Source: Lepidodermella squamata
Taxonomy: Eukaryota > Animalia > Gastrotricha
Length of the DNA: 64,000 bases
Assembly (NCBI GenBank): GCA_047495785.1
Contig: JBLDXI010000015.1
Location: 3,906,001 to 3,970,000 of the forward strand
Direction: 5' to 3'
A program made the translations under genes and the position numbers. The first letter of the stretch is position 1. The number at the start of each line of letters is the position of its first letter. The notes below the pieces were generated by a model, which did no database searches, was not told where the DNA came from, and saw nothing but the letters and a program-made list of their open reading frames with translations. This document shows, piece by piece, positions 17,809-29,594 of this stretch.

Positions 17809-18345
17809 ATGTCGTGCCCAATTTGCTATGGTCAGCTTCTGAATGCTGTTCTGACGCCTTGTCGGCATATCTTCTGCGAGAAATGCATAATTCGATGGAT
17901 TCAATTCGATCACAATTTCTGCCCTGTCGATAGGGTCCCTCTCAAATTAGAGGACTTGGAACGGGTTTTCATTGGCGACTCGACTCCGAATGCCGACTCT
18001 AAGATATCCCTGCCAGCGATCAGCAGGAGGAATTATGAAGCGAACGAAGCTCAACTTACTCCTAGCGCTATTGACGATATCGAAGAAAATGCTGCCGGCT
18101 CAATAATTCATGGGGTGATAATGGGGTCAGTTGTTGCCATAACTCTAGCCGCAATGCAGGAAAAAATCGAAAAATTTGCCGAGTTTATGATAACAGGTGG
18201 CTTCATCGGCGGTCTGATCAATCTTTACACCATCGAGTCGAAACTCGGCGATAAATTGTCGTTTCATCGAAGCGGAATTTACCGGCGATTAGTAGCGCCT
18301 GAAATTTGTGAAAAATGCGGAAAATCACCGTGGAATTGTGATTGA
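17809..18345 (+). CDS. Small C3HC4 RING-finger protein (putative E3 ligase) with two hydrophobic segments
   Basis: CPIC..PCRHIFCEKC..CPVDR RING at the N-terminus. Hydrophobic stretches IIHGVIMGSVVAITLAAM and FMITGGFIGGLINLY. Single exon. Confidence 0.8.
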   Translation: MSCPICYGQLLNAVLTPCRHIFCEKCIIRWIQFDHNFCPVDRVPLKLEDLERVFIGDSTPNADSKISLPAISRRNYEANEAQLTPSAIDDIEENAAGSIIHGVIMGSVVAITLAAMQEKIEKFAEFMITGGFIGGLINLYTIESKLGDKLSFHRSGIYRRLVAPEICEKCGKSPWNCD

Positions 18346-18483: not shown

Positions 18484-21400
18484 TCACATGACGTTGCAGC
18501 CGGTGCATGATTGAACGCGAACCGCGAGAGCATTGCCACCCGGTCCGCCGGCGTGATCGCCGCCGATGAGTTGCGACCTTGAGCCGACACTATGTGCCGA
18601 CAAATTGACAGCCGACGACCTTTGACTGGAGCGAGCGCGTAGCACGCTCAGCACCCCACTGTGAGCCTGGGCGCGGCCGTTCGGCGACGCCGAGTTCGGC
18701 AGATACCCAGCTACAATATCAATCACCTGGCTGAGACGGCCGAGAAAATCAGCCTCAAGCCCGCCGCCGCCATGCCCACCAACGCCTTTCATGTCAACGT
18801 AGACCAGGCGGGCTAGAACTAGGCCTAATGGGCCAGGTGGTGGCCAAGGGATCTTCTCGAAAACAATCGGTACAATCGGCTTATTCAACAAATCAGCCAG
18901 CCATATTTCGCGATGGCAATGCTGCGAGACGAGGTAACGCGGCGACAGGCATGCGAGGAAAACCCGGCAATTCCTGATCGCCCGTTCGATTTCAACCGCC
19001 AACTGATCGCCAGCTGACATTTGAGCGTCGTCCAGCCAGTAGGTATAACCGCGGAATTGGAGCCATTCGCAAAGGGCTCGGACATCTGCCTGGGTGTCGT
19101 ATTGATACGAAACGAAAACCTGAACAGTTTTCGGCGTCCGGCGGCCGGTTCGAATCGCGCCGACTACGTCATGCCGCCCCATTTGTTCGAGGTAGGACAG
19201 CAGAACATCAACAGCTAATTGGTTATTCCCCGCTGTTATGATCCAGTCGCAGAGTAGGGCTAGGCTCGAGTTGACGTCGTCGGCAAATCGATGAACGGCA
19301 GATTCGTGGTAGCCTAGTAACCGGGCTAGTTCGACCCAACCCTTAGCGTCGTCATCGCTATCGTCGTCATTAACGCCATCTTCGTTATTCGGCTCAGACG
19401 GGTCTTCGACATTCATCAACTTCGCGGCTGTTTTCAGCCATTGCGGGATGGAGTTGCCCTTGTGAAGTTCGATGTTGTCGAACGTGTCGACTATCACGCT
19501 TTCGGGTAGGACCGGCGAGGCGCCTGATTCGTCGTCAGTCGCGCAGGTCGGCATGACAACGCTCGGGAACCACGCTCGAATCGGCGCCGTATTCGTACGG
19601 CTGTCCAACTCGCAGGTAACGCAAGCGTTTGTCAAACACTCGCTGAGACTGATAAGGTGGACGCAGGCCTCGTGGCTGCACGCCGCCTTATCATGCAGGG
19701 CGCATTTCGACGTCTGGCAGCCACAAGCGACCGACAACTGGAAAGACAAGCGATGAAACATGGTTGTCTGAAGGTCGCCGAATGCCCTCAAAACACATTT
19801 TCTCAGGTCGTTAAGCACTGTTAGGATGGCCTGTTGATTCACGGCCATAGACGCCTCTGCGTCCAGCGCTAGGGTCCTGCTATCTGAGTAAGTCCTATGA
19901 AGGGTTTCAGGGTGTAGGGAGTCGCCTAGCGTGGACTTGCTGGTCGTAAGTTGGCCCTGGCTCGCGGGCTCCTCGTTTGTTTTGTTCGAAAGGGTGCGAA
20001 TCGAAATCTTGATGCGGTTGTACTGCGTGATTTGATTCGCGATAACAATAACCAACGAGGAGGAGCCGCTAGCCAGTTGCAGGTCGTCTATGCGGATGTA
20101 AGACACGTTTCGACTCAACTGATGCGACCAGCTGCTGTTGGCACTGCCGGCTACAAAGTCGACCAACGACTTGGCTTGTTCCATCATTGGCGACAAGCTG
20201 TTGCTCGAACCTCGACTGCCGTGTTGGTTCAGCTGGTTCGCCCGAGATACCACCCATCGAAGACATCGGCTGAGGAAGAGCGGGTACAAAAATTCACTCG
20301 CAGTCGAACGAAATTCAACGTAGAACGTGAATAGCGGCGGGACACCGCCAGTTGGCAACAACCCGAAAGCTTCACTATTCGACCCTGAAGATAACTTCGA
20401 AGGAATCAATGGGAATAAAATGAATTTCCTTTGATAAGAGCTTTCGTTCGGCTTCATAAGCCAAGGAGTTGCTATATCTAGCTTGTTGAGTAGCCATGTT
20501 ACCCATCTCAACTGTCGATGGCTGGTTGATTCGGTGTGATGAACATTAAGCTGGTTACCGCCGTTTGATTTCAGCAAATCATTCAGGGCTGATTGATGTT
20601 TCTGAAATACCGAGTGGATCCTGTCTTCTGGGAGCAACGGTGGCGGTGAGTCGTTGTCTTGTTCATGGGCCTTTACCAGGGTGACCAGTGAGTTGGCGAT
20701 GACGCTGGCTAGATTGTGAGGTTGGACGAAGAGAATTCCCTCAGAAATGACGTTGTAGTCTTGCAGCTGGCTAGTTGCGCCCGTTGATGCAGTTGCATAA
20801 TAAATTCTACCCATTGAATGGGCATAGCGGACGTAGGCTGTCAACTCGCTGTCACTTGCAATCGAAGAGTCTGAAATGAAAGTTAAGGTAATAAAAAACA
20901 TGAAGCGTGTCCCATAAGTTGCGCAACCATTTTGTAATTTCGAAAAAATTTCAAGAAATTAAACTAATTTTTTGAAATTAAGCCCACTGAGGGAATCTTC
21001 CATTATTTAGCCACAATTTTACCGAATAATTTACCGGAAAAAACCCTGAAAACTCCGATGGTAACTGGTTCGGTAATTTTCGGTTTTTACCTGGTTGGAT
21101 CAAATTTCTTCGGATTTTCCTGGCCATGAGTAGTGACTTCCCCTATCATTTTAGAGTTTCTGATCCCTTTGCTGTGTACTTCCTTAGTTCGCGTTACCTA
21201 TGGGACATGCTGCAGAATAAAATAAAACTAGACCGATAACTGCAACGAGGGGTAACTTTGGAGAAAACATGTTTTTGAAGGATGAAACTAAAACTTCGCT
21301 CGAGAAATTCTGAAATTTAAAGCTAAGCTAGGCAAGGTGATTCCTGATTTTACTGTAAATTTTGAGAATTTTTCTATTTTCCCCTGATTTTTAGCAATTT

Positions 21401-24400
21401 AAAATATTTGTGGGTAATCTGGATTCAATAGCCTGATAGGAAAATAGGGTCGAATTTTGAACAAAAGAACAGATAAGTTGTTTTGAACTTAAGGCTAAAG
21501 TTTCCAAGTGTCTATAATTACCTGATGCCAAAGTTCGAAGTTGTTCAGTGGTCAGGAAAGTGAGTCCCCCGGTCGCAAGGTCAGCAATAACGTCATCAAG
21601 CTCCACCCAGCGTTTCGGAACAAAGCATTTCGTTGTAGGTTGTTGTCTCGCAATCGACTCAAGCGACTTCCTCAACATCGCTATGCCGCAGATACTCGGA
21701 ATATTCGAAGACGACAAAATCGGGGCAGATAACCCAGGGGTGCATGCCATAGCTTGAGGCAGTAGCATCGTCGGGACGAAAGCTGTCAGGCCGACTACGT
21801 GTCTGAACAACGGCCGGCTCGAGAACCAGTCAGCAACATACTTGAGCTTAGTCACGATATTCCTCAGTGTCTCAGCGCATTGCGAGGTCGCTAGTCTATC
21901 AGCTTTCGTTCCAACCAAGACAACGCTAGGTAGGAACAACTCGCCATTATTGTGGTCGAAAATGTCATCGCGTTGCATTTCGTGATTGCCCGCCGGGGCA
22001 GACCATGGTGAGAAATGGTTTGACTCTGAATGCCGAAGGTAGATCAACTCGAGCCAGACGGATAATTCGTCTAGATAAGCTGTTGTTGGCGTTGCCGTAG
22101 CGTTGACTTCATTGATCAACGCCGAGGTGGTTTCGATTCGCGTTAAATCAAACGCAAGCACGTAAATGCCTTTTGGAAGCAGAATTATCGGAGACAGCCA
22201 GTAGCTTATGTTAGTCTTCGCGCCAAGATCACACAACCGATACGAAAGCCCAGCGACCCCAGCTCGCCTTCGCATCGAAGACGCCGACGACGAGACTGAA
22301 GAAGTTCGAACCATGGGGACAACACCGGGGGTAACCCCGGTTCCAGCTTCATCTGCCATTATGATTTCGTCAAACATTGTCTGGGCGAGGAGTAGCAAGT
22401 CATTCGGGGTGGTTGCGACTAGGTTAGGCGAGAGAAATGTAGGTAACCTTGGCGAGTTCGGGTCCGTGGCTGCATCATCCTTTTCGTCCTTATTCTCAAC
22501 CGGCGATCCAGTCGCAGCTTTTTTCTCTTCGAATTTCGACAAAGCTTGCAGCACAAGATTCTGAGCAGCGGAGACTGACATTCTCAGGAGATGGTCCGAT
22601 GTTTTCGGGCCCCCTAAGAAAGCGCCCTGCTTATTCTTCCGCTTCGGCCTTTGCCGGATTGCCTCACTGCAAAGGTAAGCCCCAGACCATTGCTCACTGT
22701 CTTGAAGATTCAGCGAGCCAGACAATGTGTTAGCAAATAGTTCCGGGTTCAACTCAGCCGCCTTAACCAGGCCATTTGCTGTCGTTGCGAACGCCGTCCC
22801 TTCCAATAGAGCTGGGCTCAGGGATTGCCCGGTAGCCAATGCGTTGCAAACGACTGATTTCCCAGCTAGAGTTGGCCCGATGAAGACGATAGGGACGTCG
22901 GATTCAGGCGAGATTCCGCTTTGCTGGCAGGCCTCGGCATAGGCCTGAGTCGCCTCCTGGCCGCCCATGAAAACTTCACTCGGGGAGTTGATACCGTCAG
23001 CAGTCGCGAGAAGTTCGATGCCGGTTGTACTGCCGTACAGGTCGAAGAGGAGCCATAACTCTGGGGCGGCGGGGTCTGGGGGCTGCTGAGACTGAAGTGA
23101 CTGCTGTTTAGCTAAGCTGTTCACTTGGCTAACGCGTTTTACAAAGACGTTATTCACGCTGATGACGCTAGTTTTTCGGCTGAAATGTTGAGCCACGGAG
23201 ACGAACTGGTGGCCGCCCTGGGGCGTATTGCTGCCATTGTCTGAGTAGTGAGCAAAAAGCCGACCGCAGTAGTTGTTATTGATGAAGTAGTGCAGATTGC
23301 CGTCATATCCGTAGCAAATGCATAGACGGCAGCCATCGGAAAGCAGATCGTTTGACATGCACTCGGTCCAAACGCCTGATAGAAAAAATGCACACAAGCG
23401 CAATTAACCACAGGTTTCCTTAAGATTTTGTAAATATTTTAGGCTCGGCAGAAATTTGAAACGCACTCATGGATAGAATTTCCTAAAATAGAAATTCGTC
23501 TTCGCCGCATACAAAAAAAGAAAATTTAACATTAATGACCTAATATATTTGACAAGACGTTCAAAATGGACGACCATAAGCAAAACCAGAATTTCTGATG
23601 AAATGTTGTGAAAATAGGATTTTCCTCTTGTGCATCGATTTAATAAATAATTGATTTGGCTGCACATAGGAAAGCTTCTCAGAAAGCAGAATGAGGTTAA
23701 TGCATAAAATAATTGGTGATCAGCGATCGTGAAATAAAAAATGAATAAAAATTCCCCCTTAACTTCGAATTTAAAATTTTCCATTGCCTTTAAAAATTAA
23801 AATTCTAAATGCGCGCAATTTCTCAAAATCGGCCAAAAATAAAAGTCTCAATCCTCCATTTCATCCATATTTTGGTCTTCTGATATAAGGTAATGAAGTT
23901 GTTTCCCTTTCAAGAATGCAAGAGCTATAAAAATGCAATTATTCTTTTAAAATGCTGTAAATTCACAAAATTCAAAAAATGATAGTTCTTAACTAGGAGT
24001 TAACAATAAGGCTCAGTCCTATGCGGAAAATTGGTTGGACGCTAGCCAAAGTCTAGCTAGCAGGCTAATTCTTGAAGTGTTACAGCCTCGTCTGATAATC
24101 ATCATTCATCTTTCCTCATGCAGAACTTGAAAAATTGCAATTTACCAGCTGAGGATTATCAACTTCAAATTAACAAGGTCAGTTTTGGGTTTTCTTACCT
24201 GATCCTAGACGTTTTTCTACATCGGGGCAGAGATAAGGAGGAAGTTCGCCGGGCTGGTTAGGAGCTGGTGCACCCATAGGACTACTGCTTGGGCTGTTGC
24301 CATTCGTGTTGACCACGCTAAGAGGCGGGCTGACAAGCAATAGCCTGTCGTAGTTATCAACAGCAGCAATCGTCAACCCGCCGACAAGAGCTTGCGGCCT

Positions 24401-24742
24401 GTCGCGGGCGTGTTGATGCAGTCGAAGCAGCACAGACCGGCCAGGGACTAACGGGTCCGCATCTATCGTACAGACTATGCCATGTGACCACGTATCAGGC
24501 TGGCGGGTCGCGACTAATCCACTCGGGGCGACAGTAACATTTTTGCCACGAAGTGATTTCGAAAATCGAAGAAGGACAGCAGATCGATCGCCCGAGCCTA
24601 ACCGGCCGCCTCGAAGGCTATTCTCATGCTTCTTGTTCGCCGTGGTGTTGACAAACTCACCCGCCTCGGCGAACGGATCTTCCGGGCCGTACATCGTCTC
24701 CGAAACCAGCGAACTGCTGGTCGTGAAAACGGACGATGTCAT
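18484..24742 (-). CDS. NHR (neuralized repeat) - Roc-like GTPase - COR-like - Death - TIR protein with a C-terminal CaaX; exons approx 24742-24199, 23378-21462, 20870-18484
   Basis: NHR: LRFSKSLRGKNV..GLVATR and LWLLFDLYG. P-loop FIGPTLAGKS, then IYVLAFDL, VVLVGTKAD and VPKRW. Death-like WVELARLLGY..LLCDW. TIR VFVSY..WLD..SPRYLVSQHCHRE. Ends CNVM*. Confidence 0.82.
20905..21212. mobile_element. Degenerate Tc1/mariner-like MITE in an intron
   Basis: Imperfect TIR agcgtgtcccataag / ctatgggacatgctg. Confidence 0.4.
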
Positions 24743-26391: not shown

Positions 26392-28875
26392 TCAGGCTGA
26401 CAGGCGTAGTTTCGGGAAAAGCAAGATGAGGCTCATTGTAGCCGAGTAGGCCAACTCGCCCATCGAAAACGCTAGGTTTTGAATGCACGGAACAACCGAA
26501 CTGCCAACAATCAGCATGATCAGAACAATAGCAATGAACAGAAAATCCGCGTTAACAACTGCAAGTTGGATGAGTTTGCACGTCAAGGCGTGTTCACTAG
26601 GAACTTGCCGCTTGCTAGCGTCATAAGCCAACGTACCAGCGTAGAACAACGCCAAACCGTGGATAACCAACATTGCGCCGATGAAGTATGTCATGTAATC
26701 CGATGAGCAGACTCGTATCGTTGTGTCAAAGTAGTTGTCGCTAACCTCGTCGAACTGAATCTCAGAAACTTGCAGATCAACAGCTGGGGAGTCCACGCCG
26801 TACCAAATAGCGAGAACTACGATGCAAGCTGCGAAAATGACCGCTATACCAGCAATGATGATGAAGTTGATTGTCTTGCGGCTGTGGTGGCATTCTGTAT
26901 CTTCAGCTGAGATTTTCGCCGGTGGAACAGGGCTTGAGCTCGTGACCACAAGGCCGCTCATACTTTCCGCAGGAGTCAGAATTTGTGCCCGCTTCATTGT
27001 CGGCGTATCAGGAGCTAAAACAGCTACCGATGACGCACTCACCGAACTTTTCCCGCTTAGTTTACTCTTACCAGTAGCCTTTGAGTTAACCGAACGCTTC
27101 GAAGAAGACGCCATGCCAGTTCCACTTTTGGCCTTCCGCGGGAAGTTCAGTAGCTTGGTATAGCAGAGCATATGCATTACAATAGTTCCATTTATCCCGC
27201 AGAGTCCAATCACTGATAGAGCAGGCCGCATGACGCATTCCGGTTTCGGGAAATAGTCACTTCCAACCGTTGCAGTCAAAGCAGAGGCGTTGAGAACCCA
27301 GCATGATACGATGAAGAAGCTTTTGTATTTGATTTCAAAGTACAGGTCAGGATCATTCCGCTTGCAAGCGATCAGGAGCAAGCCAAGTTGCCCTAAGGTG
27401 ATGATGAATGCTAAAGCGATCACGACTCCAACAGCCCCATCTCCACATTGAGTTAGACGTTTTTCAATTTCCGACAAATCCTTCGGCGGCTGCCCAGATT
27501 TCGTGAACCAGTTGATCTTGTTGTACTCGATGATTTTGAAGTTGGACAGGTTGAAGAAATTGGCTCCACTAGGCGCGATGAAGTTGAGCCGGAACAAAAT
27601 TCGAGGCCCAGTTGCGGCCATTTGCGACACGTAGACGTCCTCAGCGACTTCGCCTCGGATGTTAAACTTAACTGGGCCGATTCGAAGACCGTGAAACTCA
27701 GATTGCATTGCGCTGGAATTCGCAACCCTTTCAACAACTTGCGGATGTTTGTTGAAGTCTTTCAAAGTCATATTGTGATGATGCCTCAGCCTCGTCTCAG
27801 TTTTATTCAGAGCAACAACCGCAGCCATCATGGCGTCGTGGCAAACGTGGCGAAAGAAGTAGTCTGGAGCCTTCTCCCGTTCCTTTGACGTCTCGTTGAA
27901 CTTCGCCTCAAAGGTCCGATACGTGTATCCTAACGTGGTTGGTGTATCCATTTTCGGCTCAATCGCGTAGGTGAAATAGCCCGAGAAGAATGATATTTTG
28001 AACTGCTCGGCCACCATTTCTTTCGTACACATCGGGTCAGGCATCGTCAGACTGCTCAAATCCGCCGTAATTGCGCAGTACGAGATGTTTATGAAAACGT
28101 AATGAGGCGCCCTGATACCCAACATGTATGTATAACAGAACAGCTTCATGCAAAGAGCAAGGGATAGAATGTTCATCATGATGATCCGGGCGCCACTTTC
28201 TTTCAACGCCCTCACAGAGTCCATTGTTATGTCAAACTCTCGGGTGTAGTAGACAACTTTGATGTTGTTATCAGTTAGGACGGTGTACAATTTTTGAGCC
28301 GTCAAATAGACATTAGCATTTGTTGCATCTGTTATCAGCGCGACCTGTTTCCAACCTCCGAATTTCTGAGCGAGAGCCAAAGCGCCTGGCACAGTATTAT
28401 CCCCCAACATTTGGAGTGAATACAGTGATTGAAATATATTCTTCTTCGAGGCGATGAACGGCCCATGACATTGCTGGGAAAACGTTGTCAAATGAAGTTT
28501 ATGGATCGTATGGGCGGAGCTCTGGCAAGCAACTGTTGGTCCAACCATAACTGGCGACATGTAGGTGCCCTCTGGGATAGGCTTATTCTGGAACGCCATG
28601 ATTCCGGAGTTCGAGAGTTGTGAGCTAGCTGGGCCTTCGTTTTGGATGTCTGGTTCGATCTCGTAGTCGGGAAGAATGTCTCGCTGAGCATTCGCGTAGT
28701 CAACGACGAGCTGCATCGTCGTTGCGCAAGCTGGCAGAGTCGTCTGGCCCTTTGCGTCGAACGGAAGCAGGACCAACATTCGAAGCTTAGGCCTCTTCGC
28801 ATCTGTTGCATTCGGCTCAAATCCCGAAGCCGCAGTTGCGAGAAATGTAAGTATCAAGAATTGTTTTGTGTACAT
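26392..28875 (-). CDS. Intronless class C GPCR (GABA-B receptor-like: Venus flytrap plus 7TM)
   Basis: Signal peptide MYTKQFLILTFLATAASG, then VDYANAQRDILPDY, GWKQVALI, LKESGARIIM and HDAMMAAVVALN. Seven hydrophobic segments ending LFPKL. No cysteine-rich domain. Confidence 0.85.
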   Translation of the reverse strand: MYTKQFLILTFLATAASGFEPNATDAKRPKLRMLVLLPFDAKGQTTLPACATTMQLVVDYANAQRDILPDYEIEPDIQNEGPASSQLSNSGIMAFQNKPIPEGTYMSPVMVGPTVACQSSAHTIHKLHLTTFSQQCHGPFIASKKNIFQSLYSLQMLGDNTVPGALALAQKFGGWKQVALITDATNANVYLTAQKLYTVLTDNNIKVVYYTREFDITMDSVRALKESGARIIMMNILSLALCMKLFCYTYMLGIRAPHYVFINISYCAITADLSSLTMPDPMCTKEMVAEQFKISFFSGYFTYAIEPKMDTPTTLGYTYRTFEAKFNETSKEREKAPDYFFRHVCHDAMMAAVVALNKTETRLRHHHNMTLKDFNKHPQVVERVANSSAMQSEFHGLRIGPVKFNIRGEVAEDVYVSQMAATGPRILFRLNFIAPSGANFFNLSNFKIIEYNKINWFTKSGQPPKDLSEIEKRLTQCGDGAVGVVIALAFIITLGQLGLLLIACKRNDPDLYFEIKYKSFFIVSCWVLNASALTATVGSDYFPKPECVMRPALSVIGLCGINGTIVMHMLCYTKLLNFPRKAKSGTGMASSSKRSVNSKATGKSKLSGKSSVSASSVAVLAPDTPTMKRAQILTPAESMSGLVVTSSSPVPPAKISAEDTECHHSRKTINFIIIAGIAVIFAACIVVLAIWYGVDSPAVDLQVSEIQFDEVSDNYFDTTIRVCSSDYMTYFIGAMLVIHGLALFYAGTLAYDASKRQVPSEHALTCKLIQLAVVNADFLFIAIVLIMLIVGSSVVPCIQNLAFSMGELAYSATMSLILLFPKLRLSA

Positions 28876-29594
28876 ATGAAGTGGTTTGAAAATCAAAATG
28901 AAAATCTTGGAACTGCTGGTTCCAGTACAGCTCCGGGGGTATTTATGCAGCAAGTTTTTGCGGCTGATTAAATTCGAGTTAATAAAACAAATGCATTTTT
29001 TCAGGTTCAAAGACTTTTCAACATTGTAATCACAATTTTCCTTGATTAGTTAAGCTGGAGACATTATGTACAAAGATTAACGCATTTTAATGTGGGTGTA
29101 TTTCAATTTTTGGCTGGTTTTTCTTAGCAAACGCTCAATTAGCTGTAAGTAAACTGTCGGATGAACATGTTTACAGCATGAAACAGCTTCTTATAGTGTA
29201 CAAAGTGACTGTAAGAATGTCTGTTTATCAACACTAAAACTGATGACTTTGAAAACGAAGACTTTTTAGGGGGGGGGGGGGGGGGGAGTTTAATCGAGAT
29301 CATTCTCAGCTGGGTCGAGTCGATGCGTGGATCAAGGATGATTAAAAAAATTTGAAACGAACACGAGGGAACATGAATACTGGCTACGAATGTCCCCACT
29401 GTTCAATTTCTAATAGCTGTCCAATGAACAAGAAGAATTTCCCAGGGCATTTGAAATGCTTGAACCTTGTTCATTCCTTGATACATGCTGAATAAGGCTT
29501 TCCTGCTGGATGTCTGAAACTCGAAAGTAGAATCGCTTCACATTTTTTTTACTTCGATTGACAATATAAACGGTAACAATAATAAAAATTTGAA

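Follow-up and report, generated by a model that had tools for sequence, protein, structure and literature searches.

The 64,000-nucleotide stretch of the Lepidodermella squamata genome analysed here (contig JBLDXI010000015.1, positions 3,906,001 to 3,970,000; the whole stretch is called the window) carries a single intact three-exon animal gene under selective constraint at positions 18484-24742 of the minus strand. Its product is a chain of 1,594 residues in which an NHR domain is followed by a Roc-COR unit with a degenerate G3 motif, a Death domain, a TIR domain and a C-terminal CaaX box. This is the order that an initial annotation, made from the letters alone, had proposed, and every part of it was borne out by Pfam, hhalign and fold searches; the motifs quoted at that time, GPTLAGKS, CDLGA, SQHCHRE and SCTGCNVM, are all present in the translations. 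The architecture is not new. The window protein is a very divergent, fast-evolving ortholog of an old, widespread and unstudied bilaterian family, and we consider it likely to work as a prenyl-anchored, nucleotide-gated Death/TIR signalling protein, a function that is predicted from sequence.

The gene consists of three long open reading frames (ORFs) on the minus strand, joined at junctions with canonical splice-site sequences. Exon 1 (24199-24742) begins with the ATG at 24742 and ends at the donor AG/GTAAGA. Intron 1 (23376-24198) interrupts the NHR domain and ends in ...TATCAG, after which exon 2 (21522-23375) runs to GTAATT. Intron 2 (20871-21521) holds a repeat resembling a miniature inverted-repeat transposable element (MITE) and ends in ...ATTTCAG, and exon 3 (18484-20870) closes with TGA. 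Both introns are in phase 1 and have GT..AG boundaries, and the joined exons give 4,785 nt, or 1,594 codons plus stop, in an uninterrupted frame. Searches and fold prediction were run exon by exon, and all three exons are colinear on the profile of the family described below. In hhalign, exon 1, aligned together with a metagenomic relative, falls on family positions 5-87 (probability 92.7%, E 4.4e-07), exon 2 on positions 87-579 (99.85%, E 1.4e-30) and residues 1-211 of exon 3 on positions 583-763 (82%, E 1e-05), while residues ~340-760 of exon 3 share ~40% identity with the C-terminal half of the family (E ~1e-89). The pieces adjoin without overlap or gap, and both halves of the NHR domain flanking intron 1 map to neighbouring family positions.

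Public sequencing runs provide further evidence on the gene model. In run X1, whose RNA status is a guess, contig depth lies on the exons, is zero at 23400-24199 in intron 1 and is near zero in intron 2 outside the repeat. Run X2 is DNA from the related genome of a close relative. Of the 33 differences from X2 listed for exon 3, 32 are at third codon positions, as are three of the four shown for exon 2, and the indels listed number six in intron 1, two in intron 2 and none in the exons. This excess of third-position differences, together with the confinement of indels to introns, goes far beyond what chance would produce and indicates that the locus is selectively constrained. The assignment of the exons to one chain in the initial annotation is thus upheld by the phase-matched introns, by the colinear mapping and by an ORF of the metagenomic relative that crosses from exon 2 into exon 3.

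This closest relative is a 968-aa protein that a contig of an ENA metagenome encodes in one ORF, and it spans the exon 2/3 junction of the window gene. Its identity to exon 2 is 42.5% in BLASTP and 46% in phmmer, and over the first 300 residues of exon 3 the identity is 39%. At its locus (L001 6663-11645), a 177-aa ORF with the start of the NHR domain is followed by the 968-aa ORF and then by a 349-aa Death-TIR ORF. The window protein and the relative have the start M-T-S-S in common, and their C-terminal end, ...VRVQSCTGCNVM, is identical. The introns of the relative are tiny: the one at the NHR split has <100 nt, and the one ahead of the Cys/His module described below has ~60 nt. The latter sits elsewhere than intron 2 of the window gene, so intron positions have shifted between the lineages. 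A word-indexed protein search with exon 3 returned one relative only, the full-length relatives lying outside the length window of that search, and a search with the Death-TIR-tail piece returned a single close cluster at 76% identity, which indicates that the divergent clade is barely sampled.

The wider family came from an exhaustive phmmer search of exon 2 against 1.84 billion representatives, which recovered the close relative and nine weak matches (E 4e-06 to 3e-04). Pfam was run on eight of these nine and found Neuralized, Roc, COR-A, Death and TIR_2 in seven, the eighth being a 300-aa fragment. By profile search, the family comprises ~50 full-length proteins of 1,230-1,340 aa with the same architecture. 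Their hosts are molluscs (gastropods, bivalves, cephalopods and a chiton), the annelid Owenia, nemerteans, the flatworm Macrostomum, echinoderms, hemichordates, amphioxus, a spider and a tick; the family searches turned up none in vertebrates, insects or C. elegans. Almost all are annotated as "uncharacterized protein", the others being one "neuralized PATS1" from Saccoglossus kowalevskii and two partial sea-slug entries named "protein neuralized"; examples are XP_052830315.1 of Octopus bimaculoides and XP_019640924.1 of Branchiostoma belcheri in RefSeq. In a tree of the Cys/His-Death-TIR region, molluscs, deuterostomes and chelicerates form separate groups, as expected for orthologs. The window gene and its relative are placed beside Macrostomum with support of 85/88, at the end of a long stem (1.84 changes per site), and this placement may be partly due to long-branch attraction.

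The family has been glimpsed once in the literature that we searched. An in-silico survey of the Aplysia immunome names NHR, ROC, COR, Death and TIR in the legend of its Figure 6 and includes a single protein with ROCO in its "MyD88-like" set (PMC9334734); this protein (LOC101861518) is probably a member of the family. The initial annotation had not recognised the combination from any characterised protein. This stands insofar as all members are unstudied, but the same architecture occurs in ~50 annotated bilaterian proteins and was drawn in the Aplysia survey (PMC9334734).

End to end, the window protein has the domain order of the family and is colinear with it by hhalign and BLAST, and it also has the Cys/His module, the WPPPG and GGHGGxG motifs and the C-x-x-C-a-a-X tail of the family. 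It differs in its length of 1,594 aa, compared with ~1,250 aa in the family, the extra residues lying in inserts in NHR, in the Roc insert, in COR-B and before Death. In addition, its Roc-COR is below Pfam detection and has lost the DxxG glycine, and its CaaX box ends in Met (farnesyl type) where those of the family end in Leu or Ile (geranylgeranyl type). In the window lineage the sensor and switch half (NHR, Roc and COR) has strongly diverged while the Death-TIR-CaaX output half has been tightly conserved.

The NHR domain follows a 60-aa N-terminal extension and is divided by intron 1, its first half lying at ~24203-24556 in exon 1 and its second half at ~22984-23375 in exon 2. The Pfam Neuralized match is split in the same way, with profile positions 3-65 in exon 1 (22.5 bits) and 129-148 in exon 2, and in the scan of single exons both halves are slightly below the Pfam cut-off. 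Against the PDB, the family profile matches the NHR structures of Drosophila and human Neuralized at E ~3e-17.

As judged by hhalign against the family and by predicted fold, Roc and COR domains are present in the window protein, with COR directly after Roc. Roc occupies ~21619-22980 of exon 2 and has a large helical insert. The P-loop GPTLAGKS (G1; 22855-22878) is an intact GxxxxGKS. In G3, or switch II (CDLGA, 22219-22233), the Asp is retained while the glycine of DxxG is replaced by Ala, and GTKAD (G4; 21898-21912) is a canonical [NT]KxD guanine-specificity motif. COR-A starts with VPKRW (21607-21621) at the end of exon 2, and the rest of COR-A and then COR-B fill the first part of exon 3 (19969-20870); the family positions hit by the start of exon 3, 583-763, bear Pfam COR-A in the family. 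The family profile matches Roco proteins in the PDB, namely M. barkeri Roco2 (1.9e-20) and LRRK2 (3e-18). Structural comparison by VIA-align agrees with this assignment. Residues 132-585 of the exon-2 AlphaFold model match the Roc domain of LRRK2 with Z 15.1 and a root-mean-square deviation (rmsd) of 2.9 over 176 aligned residues, and further matches are LRRK1 (Z 14.4) and the RocCOR of M. barkeri Roco2 (Z 13.9). Residues 1-438 of the exon-3 model, which has a mean predicted local distance difference test (pLDDT) score of 65, match the COR domain of C. tepidum (Chlorobium) Roco (3dpt_B) with Z 10.1 over 251 aligned residues, at an rmsd of 7.9 that makes this a loose fit. For the P-loop region, a STAND/NACHT-type NTPase was considered and rejected, as fold and profile matches are Ras-like and Roc and not AAA+.

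The Roc domain varies across the alignment. G3 reads WDFAGQ in the family, CDVGGY in the closest relative and CDLGA in the window protein, where the residue after the lost glycine is Lys and not Gln. The DxxG glycine senses the gamma-phosphate, and in Ras the G60A substitution blocks the switch. Its loss suggests that GTP cycling is slowed or altered, and it is uncertain from the sequence whether the window protein has a working nucleotide switch. Between switch I and G3 lies a family-specific helical insert of ~145 profile positions in the family and ~200 residues in the window protein. Identity between the window protein and the family is only ~21% in Roc-COR, compared with ~40% in the C-terminal half. 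As a separate observation, G4 in most canonical family members is GTHRN, GTHRS or GTHKK, which lack the Asp of [NT]KxD, whereas the window protein has the canonical TKAD; judged by these motifs, the canonical members may be unusual in their guanine specificity.

A Cys/His-rich module (19612-19728) with the spacing C-x-C-x4-C-x2-H-x4-C-x4-C-x-H-x6-C-x7-C sits between COR-B and Death. A 19-sequence alignment shows no variation at its seven Cys and its two His, it has no match in Pfam or among PDB sequences, and its residue pattern suggests that it is probably a zinc site. The middle part of the module is missing in amphioxus, hemichordate and one further member. The Death domain (19135-19455) is preceded by a 17-residue acidic insert. 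The window sequence matches Pfam Death above the gathering cut-off (E 3.5e-08) and NRADD in the PDB (E 6.5e-06), and in the exon-3 model the domain has the six-helix fold, aligning with the death domain of ankyrin-G over 84 residues (VIA-align Z 10.2, rmsd 2.1). With the family Death profile the best matches are NRADD (3.8e-13), p75NTR (4e-11) and MyD88 (3e-07), followed by ankyrins, PIDD and RIPK1.

The TIR domain (18691-19134) is matched by Pfam TIR_2 and is of the TIR_2/SARM1-like class, with E 5.1e-22 for TIR_2 compared with 1e-05 for the TLR/MyD88-type Pfam TIR model. In a Foldseek search of the exon-3 model, TIR-1 and SARM1 were top-ranked, and VIA-align gave TIR matches at Z ~16 to Hydra TRR-2, SARM1 (16.2), RPP1, TIR-1 (15.9) and MyD88 (15.9). 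The best solved matches of the family TIR profile, within an E range of 5e-09 to 7e-08, all cleave NAD+: Cat1 stands at 5e-09, SARM1 at 3e-08 and the bacterial TIRs, AbTir among them, at 6e-09 to 5e-08, and no MyD88 TIR is among the sequence matches of this profile. As the initial annotation had noted, the domain keeps the Glu of the catalytic position. This residue, the last of SQHCHRE (18907-18927; Glu codon at 18907-18909), lies on the alpha-C helix, is invariant in the family and is aligned by the family profile with the Glu of AbTir ...NYE... and with that of SARM1 ...HKE..., which is the catalytic E642. WPPPG (18832-18846), also invariant across the family, is aligned with WPEP of SARM1. 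A third invariant motif, GGHGGGG in the window protein (18760-18780) and GGHGGxG in the family, sits in a low-confidence loop before the last TIR helix.

A low-complexity linker follows the TIR, and the chain ends in SCTGCNVM and a stop codon (18484-18510, stop at 18484-18486). The last four residues, CNVM, form a CaaX box, and another Cys stands three residues before it. The CaaX box and upstream Cys of the initial annotation are therefore present, and the motif recurs throughout the family: among the 53 family proteins with intact ends, 52 end in C-a-a-[L/I], the second Cys lying at -7 in 47 and at -6 in five. At the level of sequence the C-x-x-C-a-a-X tail is a hallmark of the family, and its conservation has no mention in the literature searched. 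In CNVM, whose Cys is at -4, a1 is Asn, and Val at a2 and Met at X are both permissive. The X residue sets the preference between FTase and GGTase-I: an X of Leu directs geranylgeranylation and an X of Met directs farnesylation; given Met here and Leu or Ile in the family, the type of anchor is predicted to have switched in the window lineage.

These features suggest a mechanism for the family. The C-terminal Cys would be prenylated, with farnesyl in the case of CNVM and geranylgeranyl in most relatives (CxxL), the upstream Cys may bear a second lipid, and both together would keep the protein at a membrane. NHR, a SPRY-like domain, would bind a peptide or protein cue, and Roc-COR would serve as a nucleotide-dependent conformational and dimerisation switch, as in other Roco proteins, which permits or prevents oligomerisation of the neighbouring Death and TIR domains. 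After assembly, the Death domain would recruit death-domain partners, and the assembled TIR would scaffold other TIR proteins or cleave NAD+, the latter being possible because the TIR is SARM1-like and has kept the Glu of the catalytic position. The initial annotation had proposed a membrane-tethered, GTPase-switched immune or cell-death signalling hub. Such a hub fits the anatomy of the chain, which makes a good candidate for an immune or cell-death switch, and the proposal is strengthened by the conservation of the CaaX box across the family and by the alignment of the TIR Glu with SARM1 E642. The weakest link is the term GTPase-switched, given the loss of the switch-II glycine in the window protein.

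A number of observations weigh against this reading. At the two introns, no splice-junction contig of X1 is among the joints listed, and the support from X1 consists of coverage only. The literature searched contains no functional study of any family member and no biochemical, localisation or induction data for one. Pfam Roc (PF08477) and COR (PF16095) do not match the window protein, not even with E values up to 1 admitted, NCBIfam on single exons finds no Roc or COR, and phmmer of exon 2 against the PDB returns noise only; we attribute the silence of the curated models to a divergence too great for them. Of the domains in the initial annotation, Pfam thus confirms Death, TIR_2 and, as a borderline split match, NHR, but not Roc and COR, which were recovered by hhalign and by fold search of the AlphaFold models. 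The exon-2 model has low overall confidence (mean pLDDT 56, with 75-88 in the GTPase core), and Rab and Rag GTPases match it at Z ~13, within ~2 Z units of the Roco matches. The DxxG glycine is nearly invariant in the family and lost in the window protein, and a1 of CNVM is not aliphatic. SARM1, AbTir and Cat1 have a Trp four residues ahead of the Glu of the TIR domain that the family does not conserve, and the fold scores tie SARM1, MyD88 and Hydra TRR-2 at Z ~16, so that NADase and adaptor TIRs are not separable by this measure.

How the output half would act is the point on which the alternatives diverge. The protein could be a SARM1-like executioner, in which Roc-COR-controlled oligomerisation at the membrane turns the TIR on, NAD+ cleavage is the essential output, depleting NAD+ or yielding signals of the ADP-ribose (ADPR) or cyclic ADP-ribose (cADPR) type, and the Death domain merely aids assembly. 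The TIR_2 class of the domain, the NADases that make up the top solved matches of the family profile, the invariant Glu on their catalytic Glu, the Foldseek ranking of TIR-1 and SARM1 and the WP.P motif in common with SARM1 all point in this direction. On the other hand, SARM1 is tied with MyD88 and Hydra TRR-2 in VIA-align, the upstream Trp is not conserved, and the TIRs of TLRs and MyD88 bear a Glu at the same helix position without NADase activity. We therefore regard an executioner role, in both its enzymatic and its regulatory part, as possible but short of likely.

A pure adaptor in the manner of MyD88 would instead dock its TIR on Toll-like or other TIR receptors, nucleate an IRAK/Pelle-type kinase assembly through Death and have no enzymatic activity in the TIR, with the Roco part regulating availability only. 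The position of Death directly before TIR is that of MyD88, the Death profile matches MyD88 (E 3e-07) and the MyD88 TIR reaches Z 15.9, and the ROCO-carrying protein of Aplysia was classed as MyD88-like (PMC9334734). However, the Death domain is nearer to NRADD (3.8e-13) and p75NTR (4e-11) than to MyD88, the MyD88 TIR is missing from the sequence matches of the TIR profile, and MyD88 has no counterpart of the conserved prenyl anchor and the Roco switch. We hold both aspects of this adaptor role, docking without catalysis and a Roco part confined to availability, to be somewhat doubtful, and the odds of the NADase and adaptor readings are roughly equal.

A different kind of alternative concerns the switch itself. 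The window Roc may still bind nucleotide and no longer cycle, which would leave a constitutive membrane scaffold regulated through NHR or abundance only. The DxxG glycine has become Ala in the window protein while it is kept in the closest relative and the family, Lys and not Gln follows it, the equivalent change in Ras (G60A) blocks the switch, and Roc-COR identity is ~21% compared with ~40% for the C-terminal half. Against such a pseudo-switch, G1 (GKS) and G4 (TKAD) are both intact, the latter being closer to the canonical form than the G4 of most relatives, the Gly one position earlier (DLGA) might substitute, and exon 2 has few differences from X2 (four shown, three of them at third positions), consistent with constraint. 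A switch that no longer cycles is somewhat doubtful, and we continue to prefer a nucleotide-gated Death/TIR protein on a prenyl anchor.

On a broader view, SARM1 and the Myddosome might have an unrecognised, membrane-anchored counterpart in invertebrates, namely the whole family, with a Roco switch gating a SARM1-like NADase TIR and a Death assembly within one prenylated chain. We think this rather unlikely on present evidence. If it were true, the window lineage would represent a case in which the switch half has been remodelled, with the DxxG glycine lost and farnesyl taking the place of geranylgeranyl, while the output half stayed fixed, and the family would be the first case of an animal Roco protein without a kinase to be given a function, and of an animal TIR enzyme with a lipid anchor. 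Finally, the notion that the exons belong to separate transcripts, or that the locus is a decaying pseudogene, is favoured by the lack of a listed splice-junction read or contig and by the guessed RNA nature of X1, but it is highly improbable and, as regards separate transcripts, rejected in view of 1,594 uninterrupted codons with matching intron phases, an NHR domain cut exactly at intron 1 with its halves on adjoining family positions, overall colinearity, the junction-spanning ORF that holds exons 2 and 3 in the metagenomic relative, and the 32 of 33 listed exon-3 differences at third positions.

Comparison with known systems places the preferred reading, a prenyl-anchored and nucleotide-gated Death/TIR protein, among several familiar modules. 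DAPK1 is a kinase-ankyrin-Roc-COR-Death protein tied to cell-death signalling, and its Roc-COR followed by a C-terminal death domain is also found in the window protein; unlike the latter it has a kinase and ankyrin repeats, which the window protein lacks in favour of NHR, TIR and a prenylation signal, and DAPK1 is not among the fold or sequence matches listed. MyD88 has its death domain directly N-terminal of TIR, as does the window protein. It is a two-domain adaptor with a TLR/IL-1R-type TIR, whereas the window protein has four further modules and a TIR_2/SARM1-like TIR and does not qualify as a MyD88; ~1,000 upstream residues of sensor and switch and a predicted lipid anchor set it apart as well. 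SARM1 and C. elegans TIR-1 have in common with it the TIR fold, the catalytic-position Glu and WP.P. The ARM and SAM domains of SARM1 are absent from the window protein, where Roc-COR regulation would replace the ARM domain that senses nicotinamide mononucleotide (NMN) and NAD, and the family does not retain the Trp that precedes the Glu in SARM1; NADase activity of the window TIR is a prediction. LRRK2, LRRK1 and prokaryotic Roco proteins have the Roc and COR folds in common with the window protein, and the G4 of LRRK2 (GTHLD) resembles the GTHAD of the closest relative. In contrast to these Roco proteins, the window protein has no leucine-rich repeats, kinase or WD40 domain, and its output would be Death and TIR. 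Neuralized, an NHR-NHR-RING E3 ligase, also has an N-terminal NHR, but the window protein has a single NHR with long low-complexity inserts within it and no RING.

Roco GTPases are medically relevant through LRRK2 and DAPK1, and the TIR NADases of SARM1, plants and bacteria are a current focus of cell-death research. A conserved chain in which a Roco switch is wired to a SARM1-like TIR and a death domain on a lipid anchor would offer a natural experiment on the gating of TIR and Death assemblies by nucleotide switches. For initial functional studies the family makes a clean target, being old (chelicerates to amphioxus) and uncharacterised, with none of its members from vertebrates, insects or C. 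elegans in the searches. The C-x-x-C-a-a-X tail, the Cys/His module, and WPPPG with GGHGGxG, none of which is reported in the literature searched, could guide such work, and the window gene indicates which parts tolerate change (NHR, Roc and COR) and which do not (Death, TIR and the tail).

The surroundings of the gene were also examined. A C3HC4 RING-finger gene of 178 aa with a hydrophobic segment lies on the plus strand at 17809-18345, convergent with the Roco gene, the two stop codons being 139 nt apart. NHR plus RING is the combination found in Neuralized, and a RING gene next to this Roco gene is probably a coincidence; a functional link between the two was rejected, as the locus of the relative has different neighbours. 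Directly upstream of the Roco gene, on the same minus strand, is an orphan gene resembling class C G-protein-coupled receptors, a single-exon ORF of 872 aa (26392-29010) with an ANF_receptor ligand-binding region (E 2.8e-18) followed by hydrophobic segments. Given the different neighbours in the relative, no conserved gene neighbourhood is evident. The MITE-like element in intron 2 covers ~314 bp (20901-21214) and has 24-nt terminal inverted repeats (20901-20924 and 21191-21214) that are 79% complementary. It has no second copy within the window, and its X2 contig depth is ~36,000, compared with ~70 in the flanks, which points to a genomic copy number that is probably in the hundreds.

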